DNA of 64,000 nt from Anthoceros angustus (lineage: Eukaryota > Plantae > Anthocerotophyta), in the NCBI GenBank assembly GCA_010909165.1, contig VJWM01000016.1, forward strand, positions 827,086 to 891,085. Direction: 5' to 3'. This document shows positions 32,206 through 62,400 of this stretch, piece after piece; positions within the stretch are counted from its first letter, which is position 1; each line of letters opens with the position of its first letter. The notes below the pieces were generated by a model. The model saw nothing but the letters and a program-made list of their open reading frames with translations. It had not been told where the DNA came from and made no database searches. Both the position numbers and the translations under genes were made by a program.

Positions 32206-35200
32206 CTACAACAAGTGCAACCTCAGAGCATGCAAGGAACAATGTATATTACAAATTTGGCAGTCATCCTACTAGAAACTACTTCTCGAAAACCTGGACA
32301 TTCAAACGCATTCAGATGGTTCAGAAATCCTAACCTTCAGACTCTAGTTCGGCTCTGGCCAGATCCCTTTTTCGCCCCAAGATGATATGGCCATCTACCA
32401 CGGTTGCATACTCCTTGTTGGCCTTTAAAATAGGTGGCTGGGCTTGTGTACTGGTGGAGATAGGTCCCCAAGACTGCGTGTAGTGTGCAGAGCCCTTTTC
32501 TTTTGTAGCAGCCACCTCCTTGATAAGCTTATTTGTTAGAATGCACTGATGTTTTCTGTGTCTACAAGGCGTGAGGGACACTACACATTCACGCCTCAGG
32601 ACACCTTCAACTAAGGTAACCCCTGCACAACCTTCATACGAAGCACAAAATGAACGAATTTGAGATACAATATGCTCTTGCAAGAACGATAAGGACCTCA
32701 AATAACCTTCGATGGATCGAGCTAATATATCTATGTAACAACCTATTTCTGCATTAAATTCTACAAAGATATCAAGAAACTCTGCAGATATGAGAAGCAT
32801 GTTCGGCTGCAGCTTTACGGTCGAATCAATCCATCTAACATCCTCATCAACCCAACCTTTCTCCAAACAATAGGTGTACAATAAAACCTATCACACGTAC
32901 AGACAAAAACAATGTAGACGTGGTCAATAACAGAAAGCATTCACAAACCAGCGTTGCGAGTAGGACTAAGGAAAGATTCATCTTTGAAAGAGTTACATAC
33001 TTGCAACCGAGGGAAAAATCCTGGTGTGAGAAATGTGCAATCTTGATCATCACATTGTAAACGCAAACCGATGAAGATGTAATCAGTAGAATCATCCTCT
33101 GCAGGCCATTTCAGTTGTCGTTCTGCTCCCGCTACATCTTCTCCATGCATACATAATGGTATAAAGTAACGCACTTGATCTTCTCCATCTCTACTTTCCA
33201 AACAAAGGTGTAACTCAAGAAGGAGTTGGATAAATTGTTCTTCGCTCACAATGGTCTCTTCAAGCCCAACCTTGTTCAAAGACATCTTTAGAAGCTTGCT
33301 CAACCCACACTTGCTTATAAACCCATTTTGAAGCCAATCTCGTCCATCACCAGGTTCGCCAAATATTCCAATCAATTGACTAAAAACCCCCATTCCCAGC
33401 CATTGGAGGTTAAGCACCACAAGCCCTGAAATCTCAAAATATATGATTTCCCCGGAATCCTTAAGGTACGATGCAACCACTTTCCAACTATCCTCCTTTA
33501 CCATGAAATCCAAAAGAAATCTTTTATAATCCTCCGAAATATGTGGATGCCGTAATGCCACCTTACATGTGTTATGGAATAACTCAATAAACTTGTCAGT
33601 ACAAATGATTGGAGTACCTTGTTGCTCTTCAGCCCACCTTTGTACATGTGTCCTTGTTTGCTCACAAATATTGGGAACTGGAGCCAACTTACTAACAACT
33701 CGATGCAACTTCTTCTCCATACTAGTGCGCAATGCATACACATCTTCCCAACTTTGTCCATTGATAAAAGTAGGTTCATACGATAACTCCACCAAATTCT
33801 TAAATTTTTTTTTCACCGATGACATCTCTTCACATATTGCAACAGAATGCTTATCCCCTTGAAGTTTGTCACCAAATGTTACGATTACATTTACATAAGG
33901 TTTCACTTGTTGACTCAAAGGTTTCCCCTGTTGTTGACCCAATCGTGCATTGGAAGCAATAAATTTTAACCAATAAATAAATTCTTCACTAAAATCTTTT
34001 CTATGCTTCATATCTATGGTTGAAAAATTCCCACCGAACTTGAATGGATTGTAAACAAATAAGAAGACAGAAGAATTATTAACATTAGGAAAAACAAAAT
34101 CATGAAGCGCGTGATACTCTCTGTGGCCTGCAAGGTCCCAAATTGTAATCCTTAATGCGGGAGCATCTTTTATCACCTTCACTTCAAATCCAAGTGTTCG
34201 AGGTATCTCTTCCGAAATTGTTTCGCGTTCCATTTCACCATAGTCTTCGTGTGTCTCCATCTTCATCAGAGTATTTCTTATGGTCGTTTTGCCTGAAACA
34301 AAATCATTTTAGTGATCATTCCTAACCGGCACGGAGATATGAGCAATATGCATACACGTCACTCGCTCTACATTCAACATGCCCTATGCCGCTTACCTGC
34401 GTATGGAAATCCACAAAGTACAAGGCGACATGATTTGACGGGCATTGTGGAATTCCTGCCAGAGCTCTTCTATATTCCCTGTTTTGCCGCAGCACTTCAT
34501 CCACTGCAGCACCTTTCCCTGTCTTTTCCACGCAGTGTTTTCGAAAGATATACGCTCCAGATTGGTGTTCACCTGCAGAGTCTGCATGAGCTCTCGAAAC
34601 ATATCGTCATCCAACCCCTTCCAGTCATCCAAGACCAACGTCTTGAGGTAGCGATTGGTCTGCAACGCCTTGTAAAACATCTTCGAGAGGTTGCACGATC
34701 CCGCACGCGTCTGAACTAGGTGCAAACTTTTCACGAACTGGCACCTCTGCAGGATTGGCATCAGTTTGGAGTAGTCGTCGTTATGGCTAGAGTAATTCTG
34801 TCGGACTGTCACAAGAGTGATGCTGCTGTTGTCACACATTCCCTCCAATCCCTGGCTTATAAGACAGCTAGATAGCTAAATGCGTTAAAGTGGTGTTGGC
34901 GCGCAGCATGCGGGCCACAGCTTCTCCCAATGAAGCGTCGATAGGCTCGTGGCCAGATCCAACTATGTCTAGCCGGAGTTTTCTGACAGACTCGTTGGCA
35001 GAAAGAGGCTTGGGAGCAACACTCCCAGCCTCCTGCTCTGCGTCCTGCATACCAGGGTCAATGATCGGGCCAACAGCATGGCCGTTATCCCTGCCTGCTT
35101 TGGCTTACGTCGGTTAAATCCTATCTGCAGGTACTCAACCGTGGTGTTTTGTGCCAGAGCATTCCCTATCTTCAACGCTCCCGCCTCATCCATGCCTATA

Positions 35201-37483
35201 TTGCAAATCCCCAGGTTGCGAAGTGTGGGACTGCTAGTCAGGATGTCAGCCAGGTGGGCTGCTCCACCACCTTCCACTAGAGTGTCTCCAGAAACATACA
35301 AGCTGCGGGCACTTTCTCCTATGGTCGGGTTCCCAGAAAGATACAAGCTGCGGAGCACCGAGCGGCGATTCTCTCGCAGGGCTGCAGCTATGCGACCCAG
35401 TCCATCGGCAGTCATGCCAGTGAATCCCATATTAAGAATTCGCAAGGTGCGGCTCGATCGCAAGGTAGCTGCCAGTGCAATGCAGGCTGCACCTGTTCCA
35501 AACCCACGGTACCCATGCAAATCCAGCAATTCCACTACTGCATTCGAGTTTAGACTTTCCAAGAACGCCGTTGCCTCTGCCACGGTCACTCTGCAATTTC
35601 GACGATATAGAGGGTCGAGCTCGATTGATCTGAGCGTGGGACATTTACCCATAGCTGTCATAAGGCGCTTGCTAAGGCGCAAGCGCAGTTCCTGTTCCGC
35701 CTTTGGATGTTCAACGTCCATCTCGAACAAGTACCCATAGGCGTCCACACGAGGAAGCCGACTTAGAGTAGGCGAAGGTGACTCGAGCTCCGCAAGCAGG
35801 GCAAGCAGCTCCTCAGACACAGGAACTGGAATGGTGACAACAAAGACAGGGAATGGAGTCAAAGCGGCAGACTGCATTCATGATTCAAACGTCTTCATAG
35901 TTTCAACAAAAACAACAGCAGCTTGGAAGTTGGAATGTAAGTTGTTCCATACCTGCGTCGCCTGAAGAGGTGGCCAAAGTGGCCATCGCCGGTAGTGGCA
36001 CCTGTTCCGAACCTGCAGAAGTGAGAGAAGTCAGCTCCCTGTCATGTGTACCTAGTTTTTGGGTTCTAACTTGTGAGACATACAGATGAAGGACAAGGGT
36101 AGCTAGCTAGCTTGGGGCACCTACCCTGCTGTCCAGCGCTTCTTCTCTGTATGTTCTTTGTGAGAGCATTCTGGATGTGTATCCCTTTGCCTTCACTGGA
36201 CCAGGATGTGTTCTTGATGGAAATGTTCTCCAGGACGTTTTTGCAGTTGGGTCCCAGAGACCGCATCAAGTCCCGGAACATGTAGTCATCCAACCCATCC
36301 CAGTCGTCCAACACAAGCGTCTTGAGGCTGGGGTTGTTGTGCAACCCGCGGAAGAACTCCTTGGTGAACCTGCTGGTCCCGTAGGGTTTCAAAAATCTTA
36401 GGCGCAGCTCTTCCAGAGTCTTGCACTTCTGCAGAATCTCCATCACCAAGGGATCCAGCTCCTCCTCCTCCACGGAATGGTAGTGCTCCAGAAGCAGTGT
36501 TGTGACGCTGCTGTTGTGAGCCAGTCCCGACAACCCGCGGGTCACAAAAAAGCTGGTTACGTTCAGGACCTTCAAAGTGGTGTTCGATCGAAGCATGGCA
36601 GCCACAGCTTGTGCGAGCCCGGCCTCCACAACCACACCCTTCCCCCCTGCCAGCCCCAGTACCTCAAGCCAGAGCTCGGTGATGGACTGGTTAAACGGAG
36701 GAGCAGCACTTGGACCGTGAGACTCCTCCTCCGACGAGGACACATCGCAGCTCAGGGCTCTCAAAACAGGGATCAACATTGCTGCCTGCTCAGGGTCCTT
36801 CTGCACGTTATATCCGATATCAATCCTGTTCAGAGTTCTGCTGCGAGCCACAGCGTCTGCAATCACCACGGCGCCCGCACCATCCATCCCTATCGAGCAC
36901 ATCCCGAACACTGTCAAAGCACGACAGTTGGACAGGATGCCGGCAACCTGTTGCGCCCCGGCAGCATTTCCTATCTCATTCCCATCGAGGTACAACACGC
37001 GGAGGACAGATCCGCTGTTGTCTCGCAAGGCTGCGGAGATATGCCCCAGGCCTTCCACTCTCAGGTCGAGCCCCCGCAAGTCCAGAGCCCCCACGCTGCG
37101 GCTGTGTCGCAGGACCACGTCAGCGAGTGCAGCGCACGCTTCCGTCGTCCCGAATCCTTGGATGTGGTTCAAGAAGAGGCTTTCCAACACCCGATTGCGC
37201 TTCAACCCGTTCAGCAATGCCAATGCCTCCACGTCCCTCACGCTGTACAACCCGAGCTCCCCAAGGGATTCAGATTGATCGTCTTGAGGCTCCGGCAGTT
37301 GCCGATGGCGGACATTATCCGCAAGCGCAGCTCCCGCCTGGACGCGTCTGAATCACGCTCCCGGCCAGGAAGTAGCTGCCCCAGGAACCCGCAGGAGGAG
37401 ATCTGGCAGGGTCGGGGAGACGGACTCGAGGCTGACGAGCAGGAAACCAGCTCGGCGGGAAGAGGCGGAGGCGGTTCCGCCAT
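31337..37483 (-). CDS. LRR-Roc-COR (TORNADO1-like Roco) protein with a fused C-terminal caspase domain, copy 1; several 1-2-bp frameshifts in the LRR exons
   Basis: Exons: LRR module A (37483-~36123), linker (~36012-35953), LRR module B to the P-loop (~35826-34397), Roc-COR (34292-33001), COR end (32887-32335) and caspase (32205-31337). Roc motifs: GFPYAG|KTT, RTLGFEV, IWDLAGHREY, VTFGDK. TRN1-like motifs: GLRLQCDD..FLTPGFFPRLQ and LTPCRHRK. Confidence 0.85.
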
Positions 37484-39387: not shown

Positions 39388-39731
39388 ACCGGACGACGGG
39401 CACCAGCCTGTGGGCCCCGTGATACCAAATGCGCTTGGCGGAGAGGCGTAAATAATACCTACAAGTTGTTGCCGTGGCTGGGAAGAAGAGCTTTCCTGTA
39501 CACACACAAGGACGTTTGATGTTGCATGGAGGCATCACTGCCTAAAGGAAGTTAGTGCCTGTTGCGTGCTTGGAGACGACGCCATCGCCACGGGCCAATG
39601 CCGGTTCTCCGGTGGACGACCGCCCACACCGTCCGCTGCACCACGTACGAAGCTTCCACACCAGCATCTGAAACGAGAAAACGTCGTCGCTTCAACCCTA
39701 ACCCTACTTTCGAAAGTGCGCGGCCGGCCGG

Positions 39732-41698
<1,967 letters not shown>

Positions 41699-43865
41699 TC
41701 TCCACAACCTTCAGGTGTCAACAGCACATCATACCAAACGAAAGCTCAGCACTCAGCTGCCAGCTGGATCCTGCCCTGCCCATATCAGTCTCCTTGCAGC
41801 CTGCAGACACCGCCTCGTGCATCAAACCAACTCCTCGGAACACGCCTCTTCCAATAATTCAGCAGCCGGGGAAGTACAAACACACAACCGGACACTCGGC
41901 TGCGACTGCCTTGGTGAGGTGAGAGAGAGAAGGGGGAGGCCAATAATGCTCCTTTTCCCTGCTGTAAAGATTTCCCTTTCCTCTACTCTACTCCATGTTA
42001 TCTCCATGGATGCAATGTAATGCCATGCTGTTAGGACTCACAAACATCACAGTCAGAGCTACGCCACAGGATCAACACAGTTAGCAGACACAAGAAGCAG
42101 AGGCAATGGATGTCGTCTGTAACAGCACCACTGGCTTGAGGTAAATAGTAAAGGTAGTCACTCACTCATATCAGCTAGACAGGACAATTATATGGTGCAC
42201 AGAAGCACTACATGTGTAGTATAGGCTAGGATAGCCCTTGGGGCTTGGCATAACCTCGAGGATATGACTCTTATCTCGATATATTCAGCATCCTATATAC
42301 TACGAGAAAGTAGCAGAGGCTTGCAATTGCCCATGTCTGCAGAATGAGCGGACTATCTAGGTCTCGCTGGCAGGTATGACACAAGCGTACATAGTCTTGC
42401 CTCCAGAGATGTTGCTACTTTTATTCATTCAAGGTTTCAGATGCCAGAGCTAGCTTCTCACAGCATGCATCTTCTTCCTCTTTTTCCTTTGTCACACAGC
42501 GGCTTCAACACCAAGTTTGTGGTGTGTGGTATGTGTGTACGTAGCTCCCTTCCTAATTCAGACGTAGATACAATGCTACTCTCTACCTTGCGCGAAATTT
42601 CATCCCTCTTCTCTCTCTCGAGAACCCACGACAAATCCTTTACATCAATGCCAGACTGTACAGCAAGTTTCTTGTTAGCTCCAGCTGACTCTCCGAGCCT
42701 GCCTACTCCTGTGCACCTGCCTGAAGCTGCATCCACATTTGCCACGAGGATGCATGGAGACGCCTGCTGCGAAACCTGGCTCACAAGACTGTCAAACCAT
42801 TCCGCTAGGACAAAAACCAGACTGTCAAAGCACCGTGTTACGCTTCCTACATCCCCATGAGTTCTGGCAAGGTACCAGGAATCGAACAGGCATTGAGAAG
42901 CAAGCAAGAGTAACATTGAGAACTAAAATCAGCCCTTGTTGCTCCAATCTTCGACACAGAGCAATCGCCTCCTGACCCAGCCCGTGCCCTGCATTCCCAG
43001 CCATCAGCATACTCAAGCCTGACACTGAGCCCAGGTCATGGACTGCTCGCCCCACAAGGTTTGTTCAGCCACACATCTCTTGAGAACACTGTACAACAGA
43101 GAAGATGACACAGTAGATCTCGATTGTGTCCGAGCCGAGAGGGTCAAGCACCATCAGCATGTCACCACATACAAGTTCGTGGTGTGCGAGAAGCATACAT
43201 GATCTAATCCACATCTCAACAGCGAAAACTCTCTTTAGTTTGACACTTATGTAATTAGAAAACATAGAGATGAGTGATCAACATGGGAGATGAGTGATCT
43301 TCAGTTTAAAATCTGAGATGGGACAATGGCACGTCCTAAATGAGAGACATCTCTCCCAGCCGGCGCTGATCAGGAAGGTAGAACAACGCATGCCTCGCAT
43401 GTGAGAGATTTAGAAGTCATTCCACCAGCGGCACGCTCTGCACTTTCAAGAAAGAGGAACGCAAATCTGCACTTGCCTTGTGAAATCAAAAGCTACAGCT
43501 ACAGCTCTACAATTGGCTCGTTCTTTCCTCCCTACCCTCTATGAGCTAGCACTTGTTCACTACTGAACACAAGGAGGCTGTGAGATGTTTCTTCTGCATG
43601 CAGCATGCGCACCTGAACTTACGAAATGACCAGAAAGGACAGATGAGAATGCACCAAGCGTGCCTGGCCTATCACCACTACTTTCTTTTGTCAATTGCAG
43701 TCGAGCCTGAACGTCCGAAATGAGTAGGAAACGACAAATGAGAACGCATTGGAACAAATGAGAAGGCGTTGGAATGCACCAACAGTGTCTCTCTCGAGAC
43801 CATACCTGAGAGCGGATTGAAGCTTGTCATCGCCACACCCAACTCCCGCTGGCCAGGCAAGTGAG

Positions 43866-46800
43866 CTATGGTGAAGACCAGTACAGTCCTCTTGTGAGGG
43901 TGGACTTAAACTCGGGACACTGGAATTTCTTTTCGATGCCCTGTCCTGATCCGCTTGCGAGTTTGACCTCCATATCCGTGACCTTGCGAATCACGTTTGT
44001 TAAGATGCTCAATACATCTGCCGTTTTAGAGCCGTCGATGATGGCTTCCATAAAAGCTGTGATAAAGTTTGTGCCTTTCTCGGTATCTCTGAAGGATTGT
44101 TGTCCAGGACTGGTGGAGTAAACAATGAGACAATCGCACACAGAATGCAGGGCTCGGACTTCTCCGGCTCTCTTGCTCACCACTTGGCTCTCCTCAACTT
44201 CAGAGTCCTCGGCTTTCTTGATTTTGATAAGGCTGCCACTTCCTCGACAAGCATTGATCACAAAGACCTTAGGCTTGTTTGCAAGATACCTGGATTCAGA
44301 GATGGGCTTCACGATATCATCATCAACATATAGCTTCTCGCCACTTGCTTCACTTATGAGGATGTAATCTCGTCCATTTTCATCGATCCCCCCATGGGCA
44401 TTCATGCAACACAGAAAGCAATCGTCGTTAGCCAGGGTAGGGACCTTGGCAAGTCTCCTAAGATAAGATTTGACGTTCTCAGATTGGTTCACCACTATAT
44501 CTGTATCGAACGCCAAATTCTTGAGAAGAGCTTCAAGTCGCCCTCTGTCGACAGCTCCACCAGGTCTGTCCTTTTCTATGCTCACAATCACTGCCAAACC
44601 TCTCGTTTGCCTGCTGCCACACTGTCATTAGGATAACTCTCTGCAAAATGTTGTACTCTGCACTGCCTGCACTTGCGGGGATAGCTGTGTAGGAGTTCCC
44701 CGACAGAAGCTGCTGTTTTTTGATTTCGATCCTACAACAAGTGCAACCTCAGAGCATGCAAGGAACAATGTATACTACAAATTTGGCAGTCATCCTACTA
44801 GAAACTACTTCACCAAAACCAGGACATTCAAACGCATTCAGATGGTTCAGAAATCCTAACCTTCATACTCTACTTCGACTCTGGCCAGATCCCCTTTTTG
44901 CCCCAAGATCACGTGCCCATCTACCACGGTTGCATACTCCTTGTTGGCCTTTAAAATAGGTGGCTGGGCTTGTGTACTGGTGGAGATAGGTCCCCAAGAC
45001 TGCGTGTAGTGTGCATAGCCCTTTTCTTTTGTAGTAGCCACCTCCTTGATAAGCTTATCTGTCAGAATGCACTGATGTTTTCTGTGTCTACATGGCGTGA
45101 GGGACACTACACATTCACGCCTCAGGACACCTTCAACTAAGGTAACCCCTGCACAACCCTCATACGAAGCACAAAATGAACGAATTTGAGATACAATATG
45201 CTCTTGCAAGAACGATAAGGACCTCAAATAACCTTCGGTGGATCGAGCTAATATATCTATGTAACAACCTATTTCTGCATTAAATTCTACAAAGATATCA
45301 AGAAACTCTGCAGATATGAGAAGCATGTTCAGCTGCAGCTTTACGTTCGAATCAATCCATCTAACATCCTCATCAACCCAACCTTTCTCCAAACAATAGG
45401 TGTACAATAAAACCTATCACGCGTACAAACAAAAACAATGTAAACGTGGTCAATAACAGAAAGCATTCACAAACTTGCGTTGCGAGTAGGACTAAGGAAA
45501 GATTCATCTTTGAAAGAGTTACATACTTGCAACCGAGGGAAAAATCCTGGTGTGAGAAATGTGCAATCTTGATCATCACATTGTAAACGCAAACCGATAA
45601 AGATGTAGTCAATAGAATCATCCTCTGCATCCTTTGCAGGCCATTTCAGTTGTCGGTCTGCTCCCGCTATATCTTCATCTCCATACATACATGTTGGTAT
45701 AAAGTAACGCACTTGATCTTCTTCATCTCTACTTTCCAAACATAGGTGTAACTCAAGAACGAGTTGGATAAATTGTTCTTCGCTCACAATGGTCTCTTCA
45801 AGCCCAACCTTGTTCAAAGACATTTTTAGAAGCTTGCTCAACCCCCACTTGCTTATAAACCCATTTTGAAGCCAATCTCGTCCATCACCAGGTTCGCCAA
45901 ATATTCCAATCAATTGACCAAAAACCCCCATTCCCAGCCATTGGAGGTTAAGCACCACAAGCCCGATATCTCAAAATATATGATTTCCCCGGAATCCTTA
46001 AGGTACGATGCAACCACTTTCCAACTATCCTCCTTTACCATGAAATCCAAAAGAAATTTTTTATAATCCTCCGAAATGTGTGGATGCTCTAATGCCACCT
46101 TACATGTGTTAAGGAATAACTCATTAAACTTGTCAATAGAAATGATTGGGGTACCTTGTTGGTCTTCAGCCCACCTTTGTACATGTATCCTTGTTTGCTC
46201 ACAAATATTGGGAACTGGGGCCAACTTGCTAACAACTTGATGCAACTTCTTCTCCAGACTAGTGCGCAATGCGTACACATCTTCCCAACTTTGTCCATTG
46301 ATAAAAGTAGGTTCATACGATAACTCCACCAAATTCGTAAACTTTTTCTTCACCAGTAACATCTCTTCACATATTGCAACAGAATGCTTATCCCCTTTAA
46401 GCTTGTCACCAAATGTTACGATGACATGTACATAAGGTCTCACCTATTGACCCAATCGCGCGTTGGAAGCAATAAATTTTAACCAATAAATAAATTCTTC
46501 CTAAAATCTTTTCTATGCTTCATATCCACGGTTGAAAAATTCCCACCCAACTTGAATGGATTGTAAACAAATAAGAAGACAGAAGAATTATTAACATTAG
46601 GAAAAACAAAATCATGCAGCGCGTGATACTCCCTATGGCCTGCAAGGTCCCAAATTGTAATCCTTAATGCGGAGCATCTTTTATCACCTTCACTTCAAAT
46701 CCAAGTGTTCGAGGTATCTCTTCCGAAATTGTTATTTCAGCATAGTCTTCATGTGTCTCCATCATCATCAAAGTGTTTCTTATGGTCGTTTTGCCTGCAA

Positions 46801-49800
46801 CAAAATCATTTTAGTGATCATTCCTAACCGGTACGGAGATATGAGCAATATGAATGCACGTCACTCGCTCTACATTCAACATGCCCTATGCCGCTTACCT
46901 GCGTATGGAAATCCACAAAGTACAAGGCGACATGATTTGACGGGCATTGTGGGAATTCCTGCCAGAGCTCTTCTATATTCCCTGTTTTGCCGCAGCACTT
47001 TATCCACTGCAGCACCTTTGCCCTGTCTTTCCCACGCAGTGTTTTCGAAAGATATACGCTCCAGATTGGTGTTCACCTGCAGAGCCTGCATGAGCTCTCG
47101 AAACATATCGTCATCCAACCCCTTCCAGTCATCCAATACCAACGTCTTGAGGTAGCGATTGGTCTGCAACGACCTGAAAAACATCTTCGAGAGGTTGCAC
47201 GATCCCGCACACTCGTGAACCAGGTGCAAACTTCTCACGGACTGGCACCTCTGCAGGATTGGCATCAGTTTGAAGTAATCGTCGTTATGGCTAGAGCCAT
47301 TGTGTCGGACTGTCACACGAGTGATGCTGCTGTTGTCACACAGTCCCTCCAATCCCCGGCTTATGAGACAGCTAGATAGCTGGAAATGCGTTAAAGTGGT
47401 GTTGGCGCGCAGCATGCGGGCCACAGCTTCTCCCAATGAAGCGTCCATAGGCTCGTGGCCAGATCCAAATATTTCTAGCCGAGGTGTCTGACAGACTCGT
47501 TGGCAGAAAGAGGCTTGGGAGCAACACTCCCAGCCTCCTGCTCTGCGTCCTGCATACCAGGGGTCAATGATCGGGCCAACAGCATGGCCATTATCCCTGC
47601 CTGCTTTGGCTTACTTCGGTCAAATCCTATCCGCAGCCCGTCAAGCGTGGTGGTTTTTGCCAGAGCATTCCCTATCTTCAATGCTCCCGCCTCATCCATG
47701 CCTATATCGGAAATCCCCAGGTTGCGAAGTGTGGGACTGCTAGTCAGGATGTCCGCCAGGTGGTCTGCTCCAGCACCTTCCACTATAGTGTCTCCAGAAA
47801 GATACAAGCTGCGGGCACTTTCTCCTATGGTCGGGTTCTCAGAAAGATACAAGCCGCGGAGCACCGAGCTGCGATTCTCTCGCAGGGCTGCAGCTATGCG
47901 ACCCAGTCCATCGGCAGTCATGCCAGTGCGTTCCATATTAAGATTTTCCAAGGTGCGGCTCGATCGCAAGGTAGCAGCCAGTGCAATGCAGGCTCCACCT
48001 GTTCCAAACCCACGGTACCCACTCAAATCCAGCAATTCCACTACTGCATTCGAGTTAAGACCTTCCAAGAACGCCGTCGCCTCTGCCACCGTCACTGTGC
48101 AATTTTGACGCCCTAGAGGGTCGAGCTCGATTGATCTGAGCGTGGGACATATACCCATAGCTGTCATAAGGCGCAAGCGCAGTTCCTGTTCCGCCTTTGG
48201 ATGTTCAACGTCCACCTCGAACAAGTACCCATAGGCTTCCACACGAGGAAGCCGACTTATAGTAGGCGAAGGTGACTCGAGCTCCGCAAGCAGGGCAAGC
48301 AGCTCCTCAGACACAGGAACTGGAATGGTGACAACAAAGACAGGGAATCGAGTCAAAACGGCAGACATGCATTCATGATTCAAACGTCTACATAGTTTCA
48401 ACAACAACAACAGCAGCTTGGAAGTTGGAATGTAAGTTGTTCCATACCTGCGTCGCCTGAAGAGGTGGCCAAAGTGGCCATCGCCGGTAGTGGCACCTGT
48501 TCCGAACCTGCAGAAGTGAGAGAAGTCAGCTCCCTGTCATATATGTCTACCTAGTTTTTGGGTTCTAACTTGTGAGACATACAGATGAAGGACAAGGGTA
48601 GCTAGCTAGTTTGGGGCACCTACCCTGACGTCCAGCGCTTCTTCTCTGTATGTTCTTTGTGAGAGCATTCTGGATGCGTATCACTTTGCCTTCACTGTCC
48701 CAGGATGTGTTCTTGATGGAAATGTTCTCCAGAACGTTTTTGCAGTTGGGTCGCAGAGACCCCATCAAGTCCCGGAACATGTAGTCATCCAACCCATCCC
48801 AGTTCTCCAACACAAGCGTCTTGAGGCTGGGGTTGTTGTGCAACCCTGGGAAGAACTCCTTGGTGAACCTGCTGGTCCCGTAGGGTTTCAAAAATATGAG
48901 GCGCAGCTCTTCCAGAGTCTTGCACTTCTGCAGAATCTCCATCACAAAGGGATCCAGCTCCTCCTCCTCCACGGAATGGTGGTGGACCAGATGCAGTGTC
49001 GTGATGCTGCTGTTGTGAGCCAGTCCCGACAACCCGCGGGTCACAAAAAAGCTGGTTACCCTCAGGACCTTCAAAGTGGTGTTCGATCGAAGCATGGCAG
49101 CCACAGCTTGTGCGAGCCCGGCCTCCGCAACCACACACTTCCGCCCTGCCCCGGATACCACAAGGCAGAGCTTGGTGATAGACTGGTTAAACGGAGGAGC
49201 AGTACTTGGACCGTGAGACTCCTCCTCCGACGAGGACACATCGCAGCTCAGGGCTCTCAAAACAGGGATTAACGTTGCTGCCTGCTCAGGGTCCTGCTGC
49301 AGGATATCCGATAAGAATCATGTCCAGAGTGCTGCTGCGAGCCACAGCGTCTGCAATCACCACGGCGCCCGCACCATCCATCCCTATCCCGAATATCCGT
49401 AACACTTTCAGAGCGCGAGAGTTGGACAGGATGCCGGCAACCTGCCGCGCCCCGGCAGCATTTCCTATCTCATTCCCATCGAGATGCAACTCGCGGAGGA
49501 CAGATCCGCTGTTGTCTCGCAAGGCTGCGGAGATATGCCCCAGGCCCTCCACACTCAGCTCGAGTCCCTGCAAGTTCAAAGTCTCCAAGCTGCGACTGTG
49601 TCGCAGGACGGCATCCGCGAGTGCAGCGCACGCTTCCGTCGTCCCGAATCCTTCGATGCTGCACAAGCCGAGCCTTTCCAACACCGGATTGCGCTTCAAC
49701 CCGTTTAGCAATGCTAATGCCTCCACGTCCCTCACGCTGTACAACCCGAGCTCCCCCAAGGGATTCAGATCGATCGTCTTGAGGCTCCGGCAGTTGCCGA

Positions 49801-52599
49801 TGGCGGACATTATCCGCAAGCGCAGCTCCCGCCTGGACGCGTCTGAATCACGCTCCCCGGCCAGGAAGTAGCTGCCCCAAGAACCCGCAGGAGGAGGCAG
49901 AGCTGGCAGGCTCGGGGAGTCGGACTCCAGGTCTTCAAGCAACGGAAGTAGGTGCTCCTTCAACAAAGCGTCCGTCAGACGTTCCCCTTGCCTTGCTTCT
50001 CCCACGAAGTACCCTCGATAGAGATGTACTTCAAGTTTGTGTTGGTGGACAGAGATCGAATCAGGTCTTCAAACATCTCATCGTCCAGCCCGTCCCAGCC
50101 ATCCAACACCAGCCTCTTGAGGCAAGGAATTTGCTTCAACCCTCGGAAGAACTCCTTGGTGAACCTGCTGGTCCCGTAGGGTTTCAAAAATCTTAGGCGC
50201 AGCTCTTCCAGAGTCTTGCACTTCTGCAGAATCTCCATCACAAAGGGATCCAGCTCCTCCTCCTCCACGGAATGGTGGTGGACCAGAAGCAGTGTCGTGA
50301 TGCTGCTGTTGTGAGCCAGTCCCGACAACCCGCGGGTCACAAAAAAGCTGCTTACGATCAGGACCTTCAAAGTGGTGTTCGATCGAAGCATGGCAGCCAC
50401 AGCTTGTGCGAGCCCGGCCTCCGCAACCACACCCTTCCCCCCTGCCAGCCCGGATACCACAAGGCAGAGCTGGGTGATGGACTGGTTAAACGGAGGAGCA
50501 GCACTTGGACCGTGAGACTCATCCTCCGACGAGGACCCATTGCAGCTCAGGGCTCTCAAAATAGGGATCACCATTGCTGCCTGCTCAGGGTCCTTCTGCA
50601 GGTCATATCCGATATCAATCCAATTCAGAGTGCTGCTGCGAGCCACAGCGTCTGCAATCACCACGGCGCCCGCACCATCCATCCCTATCCCGAATATCCC
50701 TAACACTTCCAGAGCATGAGAGTTGGAGAGGATGCCGGCAACCTGCCGCGCCCCGGCAGCATTTCCTATCTCATTCCCATCGAGATGCAACTCGCGGAGG
50801 ACAGATCCGCTGTTGTCTCGCAAGGCTGCAGAGATATGCCCCAGGCCTTCCACACTCAGCTCGAGGTCCCGCAAGTCCAAAGTCTCCAAGGTGCGACTGT
50901 GTCGCAGGACGGCATCAGCGAGTGCAGCGCACGCTTCCGTCGTCCCGAATCCTTCGATGCGGGACAAGACGAGCCTTTCCAACACCGGATTGCGCTTTAA
51001 CCCGTTCAGCAATGCCAATGCCTCCACGTCCTTCACGCTGTAAAACCCGATCTTCCACAAGGGATTCAGATCGATCGTCTTGAGGCTCCGGCAGTTGCCG
51101 ATGGCGGACATTATCCGCAAGCGCAGCTCCCGCCTGTACGCGTCTGAATCACGCTCCCCGGCCAGGAAGTAGCTGCCCCAGGAACCCGCAGGAGGAGGGA
51201 GAGCTGGCAGGCTTGGGGAGTCGGACTCCAGGTCTGCAAGCAACGAAAGCAGATGATGCTGCTTCAACAAAGTTTTCGTCAGACGTTCCCCTTGCCTTGC
51301 TTCTCCCACGAAGTACCCTCGATAGAGATGTACTCCAAGTTTGTGTTGGTGGACAGAGATCGAATCAGGTCTTCAAACATCTCATCGTCCAGCCCGTCCC
51401 AGCCATCCAACACCAGCCTCTTGAGGCAAGGAATTTGCTTCAACCCTGAAGAACTCCTTGGTGAACCTGCTGGTCCCGTAGGGTTTCCTAAATATGAGCT
51501 GCAGCTCTTCCAGAGTCTTGCACTTCTGCAGAATCTCCATCACAAAGGGATCCAGCTCCTCCTCCTCCACGGAATGGTGGTGGACCAGAAGCAGTGTCGT
51601 GATGCTGCTGTTGTGAGCCAGTCCCGACAACCCGCGGGTCACAAAAAAGCTGGTTACGCTCAGGACCTTCAAAGTGGTGTTCGATCGAAGCATGGCAGCC
51701 ACAGCTTGTGCGAGCCCGGCCTCCGCAACCACACCCTTCCCCCCTGCCAGCCCCACTACCTCAAGTCAGAGCTGGGTGATGGACTGGTTAAACGGAGGAG
51801 CAGCACTTGGACCGTGAGACTCCTCCTCCGACGAGGACACATCGCAGCTCAGGGCTCTCAAAACAGGGATCAACATTGCTGCCTGCTTAGGGTCCTTCTG
51901 CAGGTCATATCCGATATCAATCCTGTCCACAGTTCTGCTGCGAGCCACAGCGTCTGCAATCACCACGGCGCCCGCACCATCCATCCCTATCCCGAACATC
52001 CCGAACACTGTCAGAGCACGACAGTTGGACAGGATGCCGGCAACCTGCCGCGCCCCGGCAGCATTTCCTATCTCATTCCCATCGAGATATAACACGCGGA
52101 GGACAGATCCGCTGTTGTGTCGCAAGGCTGCGGAGATATGCCCCAGGCCTTCCACACTCAGCTCGAGCCCCCGCAAGTCCAAAGTCTCCAAGGTGCGACT
52201 GTGTCGCAGGACGGCATCAGCGAGAGCAGCGCCCGCTTCCGTCGTCCCGAATCCTTCGATGTGGTACAAGACGAGCCTTTCCAACACAGGATTGCGCTTC
52301 AACCCGTTCAGCAATGCCAATGCCTCCACGTCCCTCACGCTGTAAAACCCGATCTTCGGTCGGGGATTCAGATCGATCGTCTTGAGGCTCCGGCAGTTGC
52401 CGATGGCGGACATTATCCGCAAGCGCAGCTCCCGCCTGGACGCGTCTGAATCACGCTCCCCGGCCAGGAAGTAGCTGCCCCAGGAATCCGCAGGAGGAGG
52501 GAGATCTGGCAGGGTCGGGGAGACGGACTCGAGGCTGACGAGCAGGGAAACCAGCTCGGCGGGAAGAGGCGGAGGCGGAGGCGGAAGCGGTTCCGCCAT
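43866..52599 (-). pseudogene. LRR-Roc-COR-caspase, copy 2, with three tandem A-type LRR modules; TGG>TGA at 51766 plus frameshifts
   Basis: Same exon layout as copy 1; caspase intron at 44732-44860; catalytic motifs CCMNAHGG and KPKVFVINACRGSG; A modules at ~52599-51310, 51309-50006 and 50005-48623. Confidence 0.85.
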
Positions 52600-53606
52600 A
52601 GCCGAAACTTGAGCAGAACGTGCGAGCAGGACAACCAGGTCGGCAGGAAGAGTCGGTTCCGCCGTAGCCCAAACTTCACAACAACATCACAGCTTCTCCG
52701 ACTGATGCCGGGCCACCGGGCTCGGAAGAGGCAAGCGCAGGACAACAGAACCGAGGGCTGGTCTCTGGCTTCTGGCAAGTAGGAAGGAAAGGCGTGATTT
52801 TGATTCGTCACTGCTGGCCGGCGCGGAGCAGCACGCAACGGAGCAAGTTGGGCAACGTGCATGCCAGCGAGGCGCGCGTCGACTTCTTTACAATCACTCT
52901 ACATTACATTACTTGCGTCACATGGCTGCCAGCCCTTCAGTCAACATTTTTCATTCCTGCACGATGTCTGCCGAATGTTGTCGGCTTTCACGACTTTCTC
53001 TTGTGGACGACGACGGCCTTCCAGCCTCCAGGAAATCCTGACGTCAGGATGAAGTGGTCTACCCAGGTGGCGGATGGTACATGGACAAAAGCTTTTTATG
53101 TTGGCGGTGAATAGTGAAAGAGAGAGGCATTGGCGGTTCCGGCAAGAGTTCTTGTCTGAACGACTCACGGCCTTGTCTGGACCTGCATTCGATGTTGACA
53201 TGGCTGGACTCCCTCCTCCTCTTGAATGATGCTGGCATACATCTACAATCCATAGTGTGCTTGATTTTTGTGGGACTGTCACGTCCCAGGATTTACACAT
53301 CGATCATGCGTCCACTGCAGAAGGCGTGGGGGAGGGAATGAAAACCTGCTTATCTAGGCTGCTTCCCACTCAAAGCCCAGGATCCTCACACAACGTTTGA
53401 TGTTGCATGGAGGCATCACTGCCTAAAGGAAGTTAGTGCCTGTTGCGTGCTTGGAGACGACGCCATCGCCACGGGCCAATGCCGGTTCTCCGGTGGACGC
53501 CCGCCCACACCGTCCGCTGCACCACGTATGAAGCTCCCAGACCAGCATCTGAAACGAGAAAACATCGCCGCTTCAACCCTACTTTCGAAAGTGCGCGGCC
53601 GGCCGG

Positions 53607-55611
<2,005 letters not shown>

Positions 55612-57795
55612 TCTCCACAACCTTCAGGTATCAACAGCACAGCATACCAAATGAAAGCTCAGCACTCAGCTGTCAGCTGGATCCTGCCCTGCCCATATCA
55701 CCCTCCTTGCAGCCTGCAGACACCGCCTCGTGCATCAAACCAACTCCTCGGAACACGCCTCTTCCAATAATTCAGCAGCCGGGGAAGTACAAACACACAA
55801 CCGGGCACTGGGCTGCGACTGCCTTGGTGAGGTGAGAGAGAGAAGGGGGAGGCCAATAATGCTCCTTTTTCCTGCTGTAAAGATTTCCCTTTCCTCTACT
55901 CTACTCCATGTTATCTCCATGGATGCAATGTAATGCCATGCTGATAGGACTCACAAACATCACAGCCAGAGCTACGCCACAGGATCAACACAGTTAGCAG
56001 ACACAAGAAGCAGAGGCAATGGATGTCGTCTACAACAGCACCACTGGCTTGAGGTACATAGTAAAGCTAGTCACTCACTCATATCAGCTAGACAGGACAA
56101 TTATATGGTGCGCAGAAGCACTACATGTGTAGTATAGGCTAGGATAGCCCTTGGGGCTTGGCATAACCTCGAGGCCATGACTCTAATTTCGATATATTCA
56201 GCATCCTATATACTACGAGAAAGTAGCAGAGGCTTGCAATTGCCCATGTCTGCAGAATGAGCGGACTATGTAGGTCTCGCTGGCAGGTATCACACAAGCG
56301 TACATGGTCTTGCCTCCAGAGATGTTGCTACTTTTATTCATTCAAGGTTTCAGAAGCCAGAGCTAGCTTCTCACAGCATGCATCTTCTTCCTCTTTTCCT
56401 TTGTCACACAGCGGCTTCAACACCAAGTTTGTGGTGTGTGGTATGTGTGTACGTAGCTCCCTTCCTAATTCAGACGTAGATACAATGCTACTCTCTACCT
56501 TGCGTGAAATTTCATCCCTCTTCTCTCTCTCGACAACCCACGACAAATCCTTTACATCAATGCCAGACAGTACAGCAAGTTTCTTGTTAGCTCCAGCTGA
56601 CTCTCTGAGCCTGCCTGTCTACTCCTGTGCACCTGCCTGAAGCTGCATCCACATTTGCCACGAGGATGCATGGAGACGCCTGCTGCTAAACCTGGCTCAC
56701 AAGACTGTCAAAGCATTCCGCTAGGACAAAACGAGACTGTCAAAGCACCGTGTTACGCTTCCTACATCCCCATGAGTTTTGGCAAGGTACCTGGAATGGA
56801 ACAGGCCTTGAGAAGCAAGCAAGAGTAACATTGAGAACTAAAATCAGCCCTTGTTGCTCCAATCTTCCATACAGAGCAATCGCCTTCTGACCCAGCCCGT
56901 GCCCTGCATTCCCAGCCATCAGCATACTCAAGCCTGACACTGAGGTCAGGTCATGGATCCACTTGTCGCCCCACAAGTTTTGTTCAGCCACACATCTCTT
57001 GGGAACACTGTACAACAGCGAAGATGACACAGCAGATCTCGATTGTGTCCGAGCCGAGAGGGTCAAGCACCATCAGCATGTCACCACATACAAGTTCGTG
57101 GTGTGCGAGAAGCATACATGATCTAATCCACATCTCAACAGCGAAAACTCTCTTTAGTTTCACACTTATGTAATTAGAAAACATAGAGATGAGTGATCAA
57201 CATGGGAGATGAGTGATCTTCAGTTTAAAATCAGAGATGGGACAATGGCACGTCCTAAATGAGAGACATCTCTCCCAGCCTGGGCTGATCAGGAAGGTAG
57301 AACAACGCATGCCTCGCATGTGAGAGATTTAGAAGTCATTCCACCAGCGGCACGCTCTGCACTTTAAAGAGGAACGCAAATCTGCACTTGCCTTGTGAAA
57401 TCAAAAGCTACAGCTACAGCTCTACAACTGGCTCGTTCTTCCTCACTACCCTCTATGAGCTAGCACTTGTTCACTAGTGAACACAAGGAGGCTGTGAGAT
57501 GTTTCTCCTGCATGCAGCATGCGCACTTGAACTTACGAAATGACCAGGAAAGGACAGATGAGAATGCACCAACCGTGCCTGGCCACCACTACTTTCTTGT
57601 GTCAATTGCAGTCGAGCCTGAACGTCCGAAATGAGTAGGAAACGACAAATGAGAACGCATTGGAACAATGAGAAGGCGTTGGAATGCACCAACAGTGTCT
57701 CTCTCGAGACCATACCTGACAGCGGATTGAAGCTGTCATCGCCACACCAACTCCCGCTGGCCAGGCAAGTGAGCTCCGCTGGCCAGGCAAGTGAG

Positions 57796-59490
57796 CTATG
57801 GTGAAGACCAGTACAGTCCTCTTGTGAGGGTGGACTTAAACTCCGGACACTGGAATTTCTTTTCGATGCCCTGTCCTGATGCGCTTGCGACTTTGACCTC
57901 CATATCCGTGACCTTGCCAATCACGCTTGTTAAGATGCTGAACACATCTGCCGTTTTAGGGCCGTCGACGATGGCTTGCATAAAAGCTATGATAAAGTTT
58001 GCGCCTTTCTCGGTATCTCTGAAGGATTGTTGTCCAGGACTGGTGGAGTAAACAATGAGACAATCGGGCAAAGATTCCGGGGCTCGGACTTCTCCGGCTC
58101 TCTTGCTCACCACTTGGCTCTCCTCAACTTCAGACTCCTCGGCTTTCTTGATTTTGGTAAGGCTGTCAATTTGTCGACAAGCATTGATCACAAAGACCTT
58201 AGGCTTGTTTGCAAGATACCTGGATTCACAGATGGGCTTCACGATATCATCATCAACATATAGCTTCTCGCCACTTTCTTCACTCATGACGATGTAATAT
58301 CGTCCATTTTCATCGATCCCCCCATAGGCATTAATGCAACACAGAAAGCAATCGTCATTAGCCAGGGTAGGGAGCTTGGCAAGTCTCTTAAGATAAGATT
58401 TGACGTCCTCAAATTGGTTCACCACTATATCTGTATGGAACTTCAAATTCTTGAGAAGAGCTTCAAGTCGCCCTCTGTCGACAGCTGCACCAGGTCTTTT
58501 CTCTTCTATGCTCACAATTACTGCCCAACCTCTCAGTTTGCCTGCTGCCACACGGTCATTAGGATAATACACTACAAAATGTGGTACCCTCTGCACTGCC
58601 TGCACTTTCGGGGATAGCTGTGTAGGAGTTCCCCGACAGAAGCTGCAGTTTTTTGATTTCGATCCTACAACAAGTGCAACCTCAGAGCATGCAAGGAACA
58701 ATGTATACTACAAATTTGGCAGCCATCCTACTAAAAACTACTTCTCGAAAACCAGGACATTCAAACGCATTCAGATGGTTCAGAAATCCTAACCTTCAGA
58801 CTCTACTTCGGCTCTGACTAGATCCTCTTTTTGCCCCAAGATGACGTGATCATCTATCACGGTTGCATACTCCTTGTTGGCCTTTAAAATAGGTGGCTGG
58901 GCTTGTGTACTGGTGGAGATAGGTCCCAAAAACTTCGAGTAGTAGTGTGCATAGCCCTTTTCTTTGTAGTGAATGGTGACAACAACGACAGGGAATCGAG
59001 TCAAAACGGCAGACATGCATTCATGATTCAAACGTCTACATAGTTTCAACAAAAACAACAGCAGCTTGGAAGTTGGAATGTAAGTTGTTCCATACCTGCG
59101 TCGCCTGAAGAGGTGGCCATAGTGGCCATCGCCGGTAGTGGCACCTGTTCCGAACCTGCAGAAGTGAGAGAAGTCAGCTCCCTGTCATGTCTACCTAGTT
59201 TTTGGGTTCTAACTTGTGAGACATACAGATGACAAGGGTAGCTAGCTAGCTTGGGGCACCTACCCTGCCGTCCAGCGCTTCTTCTCTGTATGTTCTTTGT
59301 GAGAGCATTCAGGACTGGCATCACTTTGAAAAAATTCCGAGCGAATTCTGCAATGAGAGCAATCCGAATGCATTCTGCATTCTGGCAGGAACCCGCAGGA
59401 GGAGGGAGAGCTGGCAGGCTCGGGGAGTCGGACTCGAGGCTGACGAACAGGGAAACCAGCGTGGCGGGAAGAGGCGGAGGCGGTTCCGCC
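57796..59490 (-). pseudogene. Internally deleted Roco-caspase, copy 3: open caspase exon (57796-58664) with catalytic His>Tyr; the Roc, most of the COR and the LRRs are removed
   Basis: CCINAYGG replaces CCINGHGG. The junction at ~58970 joins the last COR exon to the intron upstream of LRR module B. Confidence 0.85.
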
Positions 59491-62400
59491 GTAGCCCAAA
59501 CTTCACAACAACGTCACAGCTTCTCCGACTGATGCCGAGCCACCGGGCTCGGAAGAGGCGGAGGCGTAAATAATACCTACAAGTTGTTGCCGTGGCTGGG
59601 AAGAAGAGCTTTCCTGTACACACACAAGGACGTTTGATGTTGCATGCCATGCGCACAAGGACGTTTGATGTTGCATGCCAGCGAGGGGCGTCGACTTCTT
59701 TACAATCACTCTACATTACATTACTTGCGTCACATGGCTGCCAGCCCTTCAGTCAACATTTTCATCGATCCCCATAGGCATTAATGCAACACAGAAAGCA
59801 ATCGTCATTAGCCAGGGTAGGGAGCTTGGCAAGTCTCTTAAGATAAGATTTGACGTCCTCAAATTGGTTCACCACTATATCTGTATGGAACTTCAAATTC
59901 TTGAGAAGAGCTTTCCTGTACACACACAAGGACGTTTGATGTTGCATGGAGGCATCACTTTGAAAAATTCCGAGCGAATTCTGCAATGAGAGCAATCCGA
60001 ATGCATTCTGGCAGGCTCGGGAGTCGGACTCGAGGCTGACGAACAGGAAACCAGCGTGGCGGAGGCGTAAATAATACCTACAAGTTGTTGCCGTGGCTGG
60101 GAAGAAGAGCTTCAAGTCGCCCTCTGTCGACAGCTGCACCAGGTCTTTTCTTCACTCATGACGATGTAATATCGTCCATTTTCATCGATCCCCATAGGCA
60201 TTAATGCAACACAGAAAGCAATCGTCATTAGCCAGGGTAGGGAGCTTGGCAAGTCTCTTAAGATAAGATTTGACGTCCTCAAATTGGTTCACCACTATAT
60301 CTGTATGGAACTTCAAATTCTTGAGAAGAGCTTCAAGTCGCCCTCTGTCGACAGCTGCACCAGGTCTTTTCTCTTCTATGCTCACAATTACTGCCCAACC
60401 TCTCAGTTTGCCTGCTGCCACACGGTCATTAGGATAATACACTACAAAATGTGGTACCCTCTGCACCTGCACTTTCAGGGATAGCTGTGTAGGAGTTCCC
60501 CGACAGAAGCTGCAGTTTTTGATTTCGATCCTACAACAAGTGCAACCTCAGAGCATGCAAGGAACAATGTATACTACAAATTTGGCAGCCATCCTACTAA
60601 AACTACTTCTCGAAAACCAGGACATTCAAACGCATTCAGATGGTTCAGAAATCCTAACCTTCAGACTCTACTTCGGCTCTGACTAGATCCTCTTTTGCCC
60701 CAAGATGACGTGATCATCTATCACGGTTGCATACTCCTTGTTGGCCTTTAAAATAGGTGGCTGGGCTTGTGTACTGGTGGAGATAGGTCCCAAAAACTTC
60801 GAGTAGTAGTGTGCATAGCCCTTTTCTTTGTAGTGAATGGTGACAACAACGACAGGGAATCGAGTCAAAACGGCAGACATGCATTCATGATTCAAACGTC
60901 TACATAGTTTCAACAAAAACAACAGCAGCTTGGAAGTTGGAATGTAAGTTGTTCCATACCTGCGTCGCCTGAAGAGGTGGCCATAGTGGCCATCGCCGGT
61001 AGTGGCACCTGTTCCGAACCTGCAGAAGTGAGAGAAGTCAGCTCCTGTCATGTCTACCTAGTTTTTGGGTTCTAACTTGTGAGACATACAGATGACAAGG
61101 TAGCTAGCTAGCTTGGGGCACCTACCCTGCCGTCCAGCGCTTCTTCTCTGTATGTTCTTTGTGAGAGCATTCAGGACTGGCATCACTTTGAAAAATTCCG
61201 AGCGAATTCTGCAATGAGAGCAATCCGAATGCATTCTGCATTCTGGCAGGAACCCGCAGGAGGAGGAGAGCTGGCAGGCTCGGGAGTCGGACTCGAGGCT
61301 GACGAACAGGAAACCAGCGTGGCGGGAAGAGGCGGAGGCGGAGGCGGTTCCGCCATAGCCGACTTGAGCAGAACGTGCGAGCAGGACAACCAGGTCGGCA
61401 GGAAGAGTCGGTTCCGCCGTAGCCCAAACTTCACAACAACGTCACAGCTTCTCCGACCGGGCTCGGAAGAGGCAAGCGCATGACAACAGAACCGAGGGCT
61501 AGGACATACAATGCCCGTAGGCTGCTATGCACATGTCTCTGGCTTCTGGCAAGTAGGGAGGAAAGGCGTGATTGATTTTGATTCGTCACTGCTGGCCGGC
61601 GCGGAGCAGCACGCAATGGAGCAAGTTGGGCAACGTGCATGCCAGCGAGGGGCGTCGACTTCTTTACAATCACTCTACATTACATTACTTGCGTCACATG
61701 GCTGCCAGCCCTTCAGTCAACATTTTTCATTCCTGCACGATGTCTGCCGAATGTTGTCGGCTTTCAAGACTTTCTCTTGTGGACGACCACGGCCTTCCAG
61801 CCTCCAGGAAATCCTTGGCGGATGGTACATGGACAAAAGCTTTTTCTGTTGGCGGTGAATTGTGAAAGACAGAGGCATTGGCGGTTCCGGCAAGAGTTCT
61901 TGTCTGACCGACTCACGGCCCAGGCGTAACACCTTCGATGACGAGCACGAGCACAAGTTGGCGGGTCGCTACCGGACCACGGGCACCAGCCTGTGGGCCC
62001 CGTGAAACCAAATGCGCTTGGCGGAGAGGCGTAAATAATACCTACAAGTTGTTGCCGTGGCTGGGAAGAAGAGCTTTCCTGTACACACACAAGGACGTTT
62101 GATGTTGCATGCCAGCGAGGGGCGTCGACTTCTTTACAATCACTCTACATTACATTACTTGCGTCACATGGCTGCCAGCCCTTCAGTCAACATTTTCATT
62201 CCTGCACGATGTCTGCCGAATGTTGTCGGCTTTCTTGATTTTGGTAAGGCTGTCAATTTGTCGACAAGCATTGATCACAAAGACCTTAGGCTTGTTTGCT
62301 CACAATCACTCTACATTACATTACTTGCGTCACATGGCTGCCAGCCCTTCAGTCAACATTTTCATCGATCCCCATAGGCATTAATGCAACACAGAAACTT

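Follow-up and report, generated by a model that had tools for sequence, protein, structure and literature searches.

Gene architecture

The window, the whole 64,000-nucleotide stretch of Anthoceros angustus DNA that was analysed, contains a tandem duplicate pair of genes on the minus strand, each with the domain order LRR super-modules, putative Roc-COR, post-COR domain and caspase; the caspase (Peptidase_C14) is the predicted C-terminal effector domain of the same gene as the LRR modules. Exon 1 of the second copy spans positions 48624-52599. This copy has three A modules, fused in frame head to tail, whereas copy 1 has a single one; each module is about 1.3 kb long and encodes about 430 residues with 12 ribonuclease-inhibitor-type LRRs. 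Every LRR of an A module contributes one LxxLxLxx motif (12 per module), of which positions 2, 3, 5, 7 and 8 are referred to as x positions. Exons were analysed singly, each by reference. The features are as follows.

51288..52599, minus strand: A3, first LRR super-module of copy 2, opened by the ATG at 52599, with an A0-like head
49985..51287, minus strand: A2, middle super-module of copy 2, intact, with 12 LRRs
51084, 50982, 50889, 50799, 50712 and 50628, minus strand: starts of the 9-codon strand motifs of A2, repeats 1-6
50478, 50370, 50301, 50211, 50121 and 50034, minus strand: starts of the 9-codon strand motifs of A2, repeats 7-12
48624..49984, minus strand: A1, third super-module of copy 2, with an A2-like head and an A0-like tail, ending at the exon 1 donor
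48508..48623, minus strand: intron 1 of copy 2, 116 nt, GT..AG, removed by splicing in a contig of run X1
47478..48410, minus strand: copy 2 B module, 40% identical to A; it forms the front half of an A-like super-module that has diverged
46879..47448, minus strand: copy 2 C module, which completes that diverged super-module and continues into the Roc P-loop
45470..46768, minus strand: Roc-COR of copy 2 (copy 1 counterpart 32944-34266), used as control domain
43869..44597, minus strand: caspase (Peptidase_C14) domain of copy 2 (copy 1 counterpart 31340-32065)
36125..37483, minus strand: A0, the sole A super-module of copy 1
34393..35877, minus strand: B and C modules of copy 1, partners for the comparison of the two copies

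A2 is a single open frame of 444 codons containing all 12 LRRs. As assembled, A3 carries an in-frame TGA (51766-51768) at x position 5 of repeat 7 and a 2-nt deletion near 51445, and A0 has several 1-nt gaps, which lie in homopolymer runs. Truncated remnants of further gene copies were found at 58-64 kb of the window. The A3 stop and frameshift, the A0 gaps, these remnants and the near-neutral evolution of LRR codons outside the x positions (see below) suggest that decay may be under way in some parts of the array.

Transcript contigs were spliced, and of the five breaks that copy 2 shows as assembled they restored the frame at three. They filled the 2-nt gap of A1 at window positions 49301/49302; the A3 stop and 2-nt deletion are not among the three restored breaks. 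Contigs of an independent run matched sequence specific to A1, A2 and the junctions (0-2 mismatches). Transcript contigs continue across the module junctions, where a run of G is longer by one base, and this ruled out a candidate GT..AG intron of about 80 nt there. The variants seen in contigs comprised 14 nonsynonymous and 3 synonymous changes, half of the former (7/14) at x positions.

The A modules are mosaics. By head sequence A0 pairs with A3 and A1 with A2; by tail sequence A1 pairs with A0 and A3 with A2, and a dS of about 1.5 separates these two types of tail. Part of the variation among modules may have been imported by recombination rather than arisen at the locus.

Domain matches and predicted structure

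No Pfam family matched A2, B or C at E 0.01 or better, and NB-ARC had no Pfam match in any scanned ORF. The Pfam matches to Roc (21.1 bits against a cutoff of 27) and to COR-A (19.1 bits against 35.3), both below cutoff, lie in the order Roc to COR. P0152 is a 1399-residue LRR-Roc-COR protein, and across 415 residues the Roc-COR region shares 33% identity with the stretch of it that is annotated as Roc/COR-A; a PDB sequence search with Roc-COR gave no match. An exhaustive profile-free search with A2 found no match above 50% identity. Its top matches were huge fish and other RNI-like proteins (28-38% identity), and it also recovered a 134-residue transcript fragment of Nothoceros aenigmaticus (47% identity); a word-indexed search with A2 returned one fish protein. 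The search for named TRN1 relatives with P0152 as query gave no match, a blank that is weakly informative.

The AlphaFold (AF2) model of the A module (pLDDT 85, pTM 0.87) shows alternating strands and helices, with repeats spaced by 23-50 residues, mostly 28-31. Every motif falls on a beta strand, with motif position 3 as the first residue of each of the 12 DSSP strands. Foldseek matched the horseshoes of the ribonuclease inhibitor (1dfj), NLRP3, NLRP9 and NOD2 (E 6e-12 to 1e-9). According to the model, the A module is a complete ribonuclease-inhibitor/NLRP-like LRR horseshoe.

Distribution of variation among modules

The data set consisted of eight modules (four A, two B and two C), all from one locus. 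The 7-8-residue motif strings quoted in the original prediction are all present as given there, across A0, A1, A2, A3 and both B modules, and the concentration of module differences at x positions that it proposed was borne out by the counts: 28/50 x codons of the A core are variable vs 47/313 others (Fisher odds ratio 7.2, p 2e-9). Position 3 varies in 7 of the 12 repeats, position 5 in 10 and position 7 in 9, and core positions 4 and 6 vary in one repeat each; the buried leucines of the motif are kept among modules. Positions 9-10 of the motif are also variable. When the register was slid by one residue in either direction, the variable count fell from 28 to 15, and in registers far from the strand it was 0-8. 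In the B module of copy 2, 12 of 30 x codons are unlike those of copy 1. The first and second codon positions carry most of the base changes in x codons; no base bias, adenine-directed or other, was seen there, and mutagenesis of that kind was discarded as a source of these changes. The helical parts are almost identical, as had been described earlier, but this is owed mainly to a recent duplication (dS about 0.05) and not to strong constraint.

Selection on the LRR modules

In a maximum-likelihood codon partition of the A modules, omega was 3.25 (about 3.3) at x positions vs 0.64 elsewhere; equal omega was rejected with p 3e-13, and an omega of 1 at x positions with p 1.3e-6. When x codons were given their own synonymous rate, which was not significantly raised (rho 1.3, p 0.6), the evidence for omega above 1 was weaker (p 0.04). 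The x excess persisted when each codon was counted as one event (p 5e-6). In a four-class codon model, omega was 3.27 at x positions and 0.57 at polar positions off the strands (LRT p 3e-12), polarity serving as the approximation of surface exposure; dN/dS at x positions is far above that at other likely surface positions.

The two copies provided independent comparisons. In the B+C pair the x dN was 0.18 vs a pooled dS of 0.038 (p 2e-4), and for A, B and C pooled the ratio of replacement to synonymous change was 3.0 at x positions (p 1.2e-5) and a nearly neutral 0.93 at other LRR positions; an MK-like table gave a less extreme p of 0.011. As noncoding divergence between the copies is only about 0.026, dS is not depressed, and the x replacement rate exceeds the synonymous rate 3-fold and the noncoding rate about 5-fold. 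Short-term dN/dS in the helical parts is 0.6-0.9. The older tail lineages of the A modules have an omega of about 0.17 at a dS of about 1.5, and the scaffold is therefore constrained in the long term. Roc-COR of both copies is under purifying selection (omega 0.37 between copies, p 0.001), and the caspase domain of these genes has a dN/dS of 2.4-3.0. L001 and L002, considered as a negative control, were dropped, being the same gene unspliced and spliced with zero substitutions between them.

Both estimates at x positions (3.3 by maximum likelihood, 3.0 between copies) are above 1 and above the value at other likely surface positions, so that the outcome named in the original prediction as refuting it was not seen; with the motifs on predicted beta strands, they agree with its proposal of diversifying selection on the concave face. 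Judged from codon substitutions, the concave face of the LRR modules is under positive, diversifying selection, with about three times the neutral replacement rate.

Alternative explanations

The x excess might instead be an old, family-wide hypervariability carried into the modules by gene-conversion or crossover tracts from family paralogues. The head/tail mosaic with its deeply diverged tail types, the further recombinant-looking variants in transcript contigs and a somewhat raised synonymous divergence at core L codons within strands all point that way. However, a tract cannot skip alternate codons, yet positions 3, 5 and 7 vary and 4 and 6 hardly do; the synonymous rate at x codons itself is not significantly raised; and any donor would need an equally hypervariable face, hence face selection somewhere in the family. 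We regard import as the source of the excess as rather unlikely. Relaxed constraint, under which the copies would be decaying pseudogenes with only the buried leucines still looking conserved, would accommodate the stops and frameshifts of A3, A1 and A0, the roughly neutral non-x LRR positions and the degenerate copies at 58-64 kb. It is very improbable, as neutral decay cannot raise a single site class so far above both the synonymous rate (3 times) and the noncoding rate (about 5 times), purifying selection acts on Roc-COR in this gene pair, and three of the five copy 2 breaks are absent from spliced transcript contigs. An assembly or alignment artefact in the tandem repeat is scarcely credible: the assembly does contain homopolymer-length errors, but what differs between modules is a set of substitutions that recur every second residue in step with the protein motif, and the contigs of the independent run reproduce the module- and junction-specific sequence.

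Another possibility concerns the source of the selection, which could be a fast-evolving partner of the plant's own or a symbiont and not pathogens; an endogenous substrate or guardee in co-evolution, allorecognition and the cyanobacterial partners of hornworts are the options. The elevated dN/dS of the caspase domain hints at co-evolution beyond the sensor, but the combination of hypervariable LRR faces with tandem birth-and-death arrays is familiar chiefly from receptors for pathogens (PMC3113787, PMC11378527), and we consider this origin unlikely.

Proposed function

Diversifying selection confined to one face is the classic evolutionary signature of receptors that must keep up with changing ligands. 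We favor, as reasonably probable, an explanation in which diversifying selection on the concave face reflects binding of a variable ligand, with the signal passing via Roc-COR to the caspase. Replacements have gathered at about three times the neutral rate at strand positions 3, 5 and 7 and their neighbours, with the buried leucines conserved, the scaffold at or below the neutral rate and Roc-COR kept by purifying selection. The face would bind a variable ligand, most likely non-self, and binding would be relayed by the Roc-COR switch to the caspase. New specificities could arise by point change on the face, recombination between modules, and gain or loss of whole modules. The original prediction's candidate role in non-self recognition, rather than a TRN1-like developmental role, is plausible: it fits the face pattern, the tandem birth-and-death array and the fused caspase.

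Plants are generally said to be without caspases. A broader reading, which we offer tentatively and with some doubt, is that of a hornwort class of intracellular receptors with an NLR-like build made from other parts, an independent invention of an inflammasome-like receptor-protease. The RNase-inhibitor-type LRR array would be the sensor, the Roc-COR GTPase the switch and the caspase the output, and the sensor would pursue an arms race via point changes on the face, module recombination and changes in module number. The gene is not an NLR but may work in an NLR-like way. With this mark of selection, the LRR-Roc-COR-caspase fusion becomes a candidate for an immune or cell-death receptor that lies outside the NLR family and can be tested, with strand positions 3, 5, 7 and 8-10 of repeats 2-9 as candidate specificity residues.

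Comparison with known systems

In the coffee SH3-CNL cluster, Ka/Ks above 1 is confined to those x residues that the beta-strand motif exposes to solvent (PMC3113787). The hornwort gene resembles such LRRs of plant NLRs and receptor-like proteins in x-confined selection, tandem clustering, recombination and dead copies. However, plant NLRs have NB-ARC, whereas the hornwort gene is without it, having Roc-COR as the switch and a caspase domain as the output; its LRRs are of the 28-36-residue RNase-inhibitor type and not of the plant-specific 23-24-residue type; and its diversity comes additionally from duplication of whole 12-repeat modules.

The LRR-ROCO proteins of brown algae, candidate immune receptors according to PMC11378527 (citing Zambounis et al. 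2012), have the order LRR to Roc-COR that is predicted for the hornwort gene. Each algal LRR is an exon of its own, shuffled and alternatively spliced; in the hornwort, 12 LRRs form an intron-less block of about 1.3 kb, with three such blocks in one exon, and the C-terminal caspase fusion and the land-plant host are further differences.

The A module, Roc-COR and post-COR regions are collinear with P0152, at 31-33% identity, in a TORNADO1-type architecture. P0152 has one LRR module and no caspase. TRN1 itself has a developmental role (Cnops et al. 2006, as cited in PMC11378527) and a single LRR-Roc-COR architecture, to which the hornwort gene adds further LRR modules and a caspase domain. Finally, the LRR domains of the ribonuclease inhibitor and of animal NLRP and NOD proteins have the same horseshoe fold as the A-module model, although at an identity of only 15-19%.

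Organization of the candidate receptor genes

In the window, units of approximately 13 kb are repeated in tandem (28589-41115 and 41120-55033), and the array continues in degenerate form from 55038. Each unit comprises EPSPS-like gene pieces and a minus-strand candidate receptor gene encoding LRR modules followed by Roc-COR, a post-COR domain and a caspase domain. This gene matches Peptidase_C14 of Pfam (E 1e-32), while its Roc and COR-A matches are weak, under Pfam's cutoffs. In copies 1 and 2, the A module or modules are followed by a B+C pair, which is a diverged A-like module (~40% identity).

36125-37483, minus: A0, the sole A module of copy 1
52599 down to 48624, minus: A3, A2 and A1 of copy 2
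48623-48508, minus: intron 1 of copy 2 (116 nt, GT..AG), skipped exactly in one X1 contig; exon 1 ends at 48624
48507-48448, minus: exon after intron 1 (60 nt)

The EPSP-synthase-like pieces, including an N-terminal exon, occur in every unit on the strand of the candidate receptor gene (27132-29165, 39909-41707, 53815-55620). A direct tandem duplication of ~1.33 kb with 99% identity (6045-8717) is unrelated to the LRR modules.

As assembled, the reading frame is broken five times in the A region of copy 2, and A0 shows several gaps of 1 nt in homopolymer runs. The contigs of the public transcript run X1, which carries the same organism label as the window, contain a third of the window's words. 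One of them skips 48508-48623 with GT..AG ends, so it represents spliced RNA; beyond 48448, X1 contigs no longer match the window, consistent with either a second donor at that point or a paralogue. In X1 contigs, the G run at each of the two module junctions is longer by one G, and two additional bases are present at 49301/49302. With these versions both junctions and the A1 break are in frame, the modules being fused directly without an intron; thus, these three breaks are assembly errors or differences between individuals. The remaining breaks lie in A3: a TGA (51766-51768) in an x codon and, near 51445, a gap of 2 nt. X1 variants relative to the window comprise 14 replacement and three silent changes, with seven of the 14 replacements at x positions.

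Three degenerate mini-copies of ~2.3 kb each (58204-64000) look like birth-and-death remnants. The two that keep the module head have the A-module start codon (63679, 61356), with the A-tail splice donor less than ~230 nt further on; downstream of the donors (63448, 61126, 59264) lie the opening 19 residues of B and pieces of the post-COR and caspase domains.

Position of the variable residues

The A modules were aligned in the reading frame of A2, which is intact (417 codons shared), and the 12 canonical LxxLxLxx motifs with their x positions (2, 3, 5, 7, 8) were marked before variability was inspected. At the DNA level, short patches of change interrupt long identical stretches. The original prediction that differences among A modules concentrate at the x positions was borne out, and all the motif strings it quoted were found: within core codons 1-363, the amino acid varies in 28 of 50 x codons vs 47 of the 313 remaining codons (odds ratio 7.2, p 2e-9). 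Position 3 is variable in 7/12 repeats, position 5 in 10/12 and position 7 in 9/12, and buried positions 4 and 6 in 1/12 each; positions 9 and 10 are also variable. Shifting the x mask by one residue reduced the variable count from 28 to 15, and far from the strand it fell to 0-8.

An AlphaFold2 model of A2, built from a small alignment (mean pLDDT 85, pTM 0.87), is a solenoid of alternating strands and helices, in which motif position 3 is the start of all 12 DSSP strands. Its Foldseek matches are ribonuclease inhibitor and the LRR domains of NLRP3, NLRP9, NLRP14 and NOD2 (E 6e-12 to 1e-9). On this model, the variable residues are thus those that point outward from the concave sheet, together with those of the loop after it.

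Selection on the LRR modules

By Nei-Gojobori counts in the core, dN is 0.14-0.33 in x codons and 0.026-0.054 in other codons, with dS of 0.05-0.08. Codon likelihood (GY94/F3x4, common branch lengths and kappa, omega estimated separately for each site class) gave, for the best topology ((A0,A3),(A1,A2)), omega of 3.25 for x positions and 0.64 for the others. Equality of the two was rejected (p 3e-13), as was omega_x = 1 (p 1.3e-6), in agreement with the predicted diversifying selection on the concave face; when x codons had their own synonymous rate, omega_x was 2.6 (p 0.04 against 1), the rate ratio rho of 1.3 being not significant. In a four-class model, omega at x positions was above 1 and higher than at other surface positions, for which polar off-strand residues served as a proxy (3.27 vs 0.57, p 3e-12); apolar residues had 0.55, and positions 1, 4, 6 and 9 had 1.21, driven by 1 and 9.

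With at most one event counted per codon, 28 x codons were variable vs a neutral expectation of 12.9 (p 5e-6). Most changes at x codons fall on codon positions 1 and 2, more than one base is changed in 13 of 29 variable x codons, and no base bias was seen among these changes.

The B+C pair, compared between copies 1 and 2, gave dN of 0.18 at x positions against a pooled dS of 0.038 (ratio 4.2, p 2e-4). In a pool of the orthologous LRR parts, which paired the head of A0 with that of A3, its tail with that of A1, and B and C with their counterparts, x codons (n = 100) evolved at 3.0 times the synonymous rate (p 1.2e-5) and the 610 other codons at 0.93 times. Noncoding DNA differs between these copies by K ~0.026, so codon bias has not lowered dS. 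Roc-COR has dN/dS of 0.37 (below 1 at p 0.001), and the two old lineages of A-module tails have omega of ~0.17 at dS ~1.5, showing that in the long run the scaffold is constrained.

In the caspase domains of the three copies (31340-32065, 43869-44597, 57799-58524), replacement changes far outnumber silent ones, 40 to 5 (dN/dS 2.4, p 0.07) and 41 to 4 (3.0, p 0.03). Caspase exon K (0.064-0.07) exceeds that of flanking noncoding DNA (~0.026), and the catalytic His of copies 1 and 2 is Tyr in copy 3.

Mosaic origin of the modules

Informative sites of codons 1-260 group A0 with A3 and A1 with A2, while those of codons 367-417 group A0 with A1 and A2 with A3. Given this conflict, copy 2 seems to have gained its three modules by exchange with a multi-module paralogue rather than by local copying. 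Recombination is one source of diversity at the locus; by itself, it cannot explain the two-residue periodicity.

Taken together, the results give good support for positive selection on the concave face at this locus, which we consider very probable. Non-self recognition, also part of the original prediction, is a reasonable function to infer for the LRR face; for selection and recognition jointly, our confidence is moderate, somewhat above even. The main limits are that the sequences are few and have recombined, that the scaffold has evolved almost neutrally over the short term, and that parts of the array show signs of decay.

Comparison with known systems

No close homologue of the A module was found in the two protein collections searched; the closest named relative found was a transcript from the hornwort Nothoceros aenigmaticus, which shares 47% identity with the module head. 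P0152, a protein of 1399 residues encoded in a Logan assembly (L002:182-4381) with Pfam Roc (weak) and COR-A matches, aligns collinearly with the gene in the window: residues 20-441 of A2 match its residues 13-440 (32% identity), Roc-COR 524-909 (33%), and the post-COR domain 925-1063 (31%). L001:709-5098 gives this sequence unspliced, 190 bases longer and with zero substitutions between the Logan assemblies of two runs. P0152 has one LRR module and no caspase. The A module thus corresponds to a complete LRR domain in a TORNADO1-like architecture, which has been multiplied in the window gene.

Plant NLR clusters are an established case of Ka/Ks above 1 at the x residues of xxLxLxx alone (PMC3113787), and concave-face sites of brown-algal LRR-ROCO genes, proposed to be immune receptors, are reported to be under positive selection (PMC11378527). 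The literature searched contained no account of a plant Roc-COR-caspase protein. The window gene differs in its LRR type, in having 12 repeats packed as a single block that duplicates instead of an exon for each repeat, in its caspase output, and in its occurrence in a land plant.
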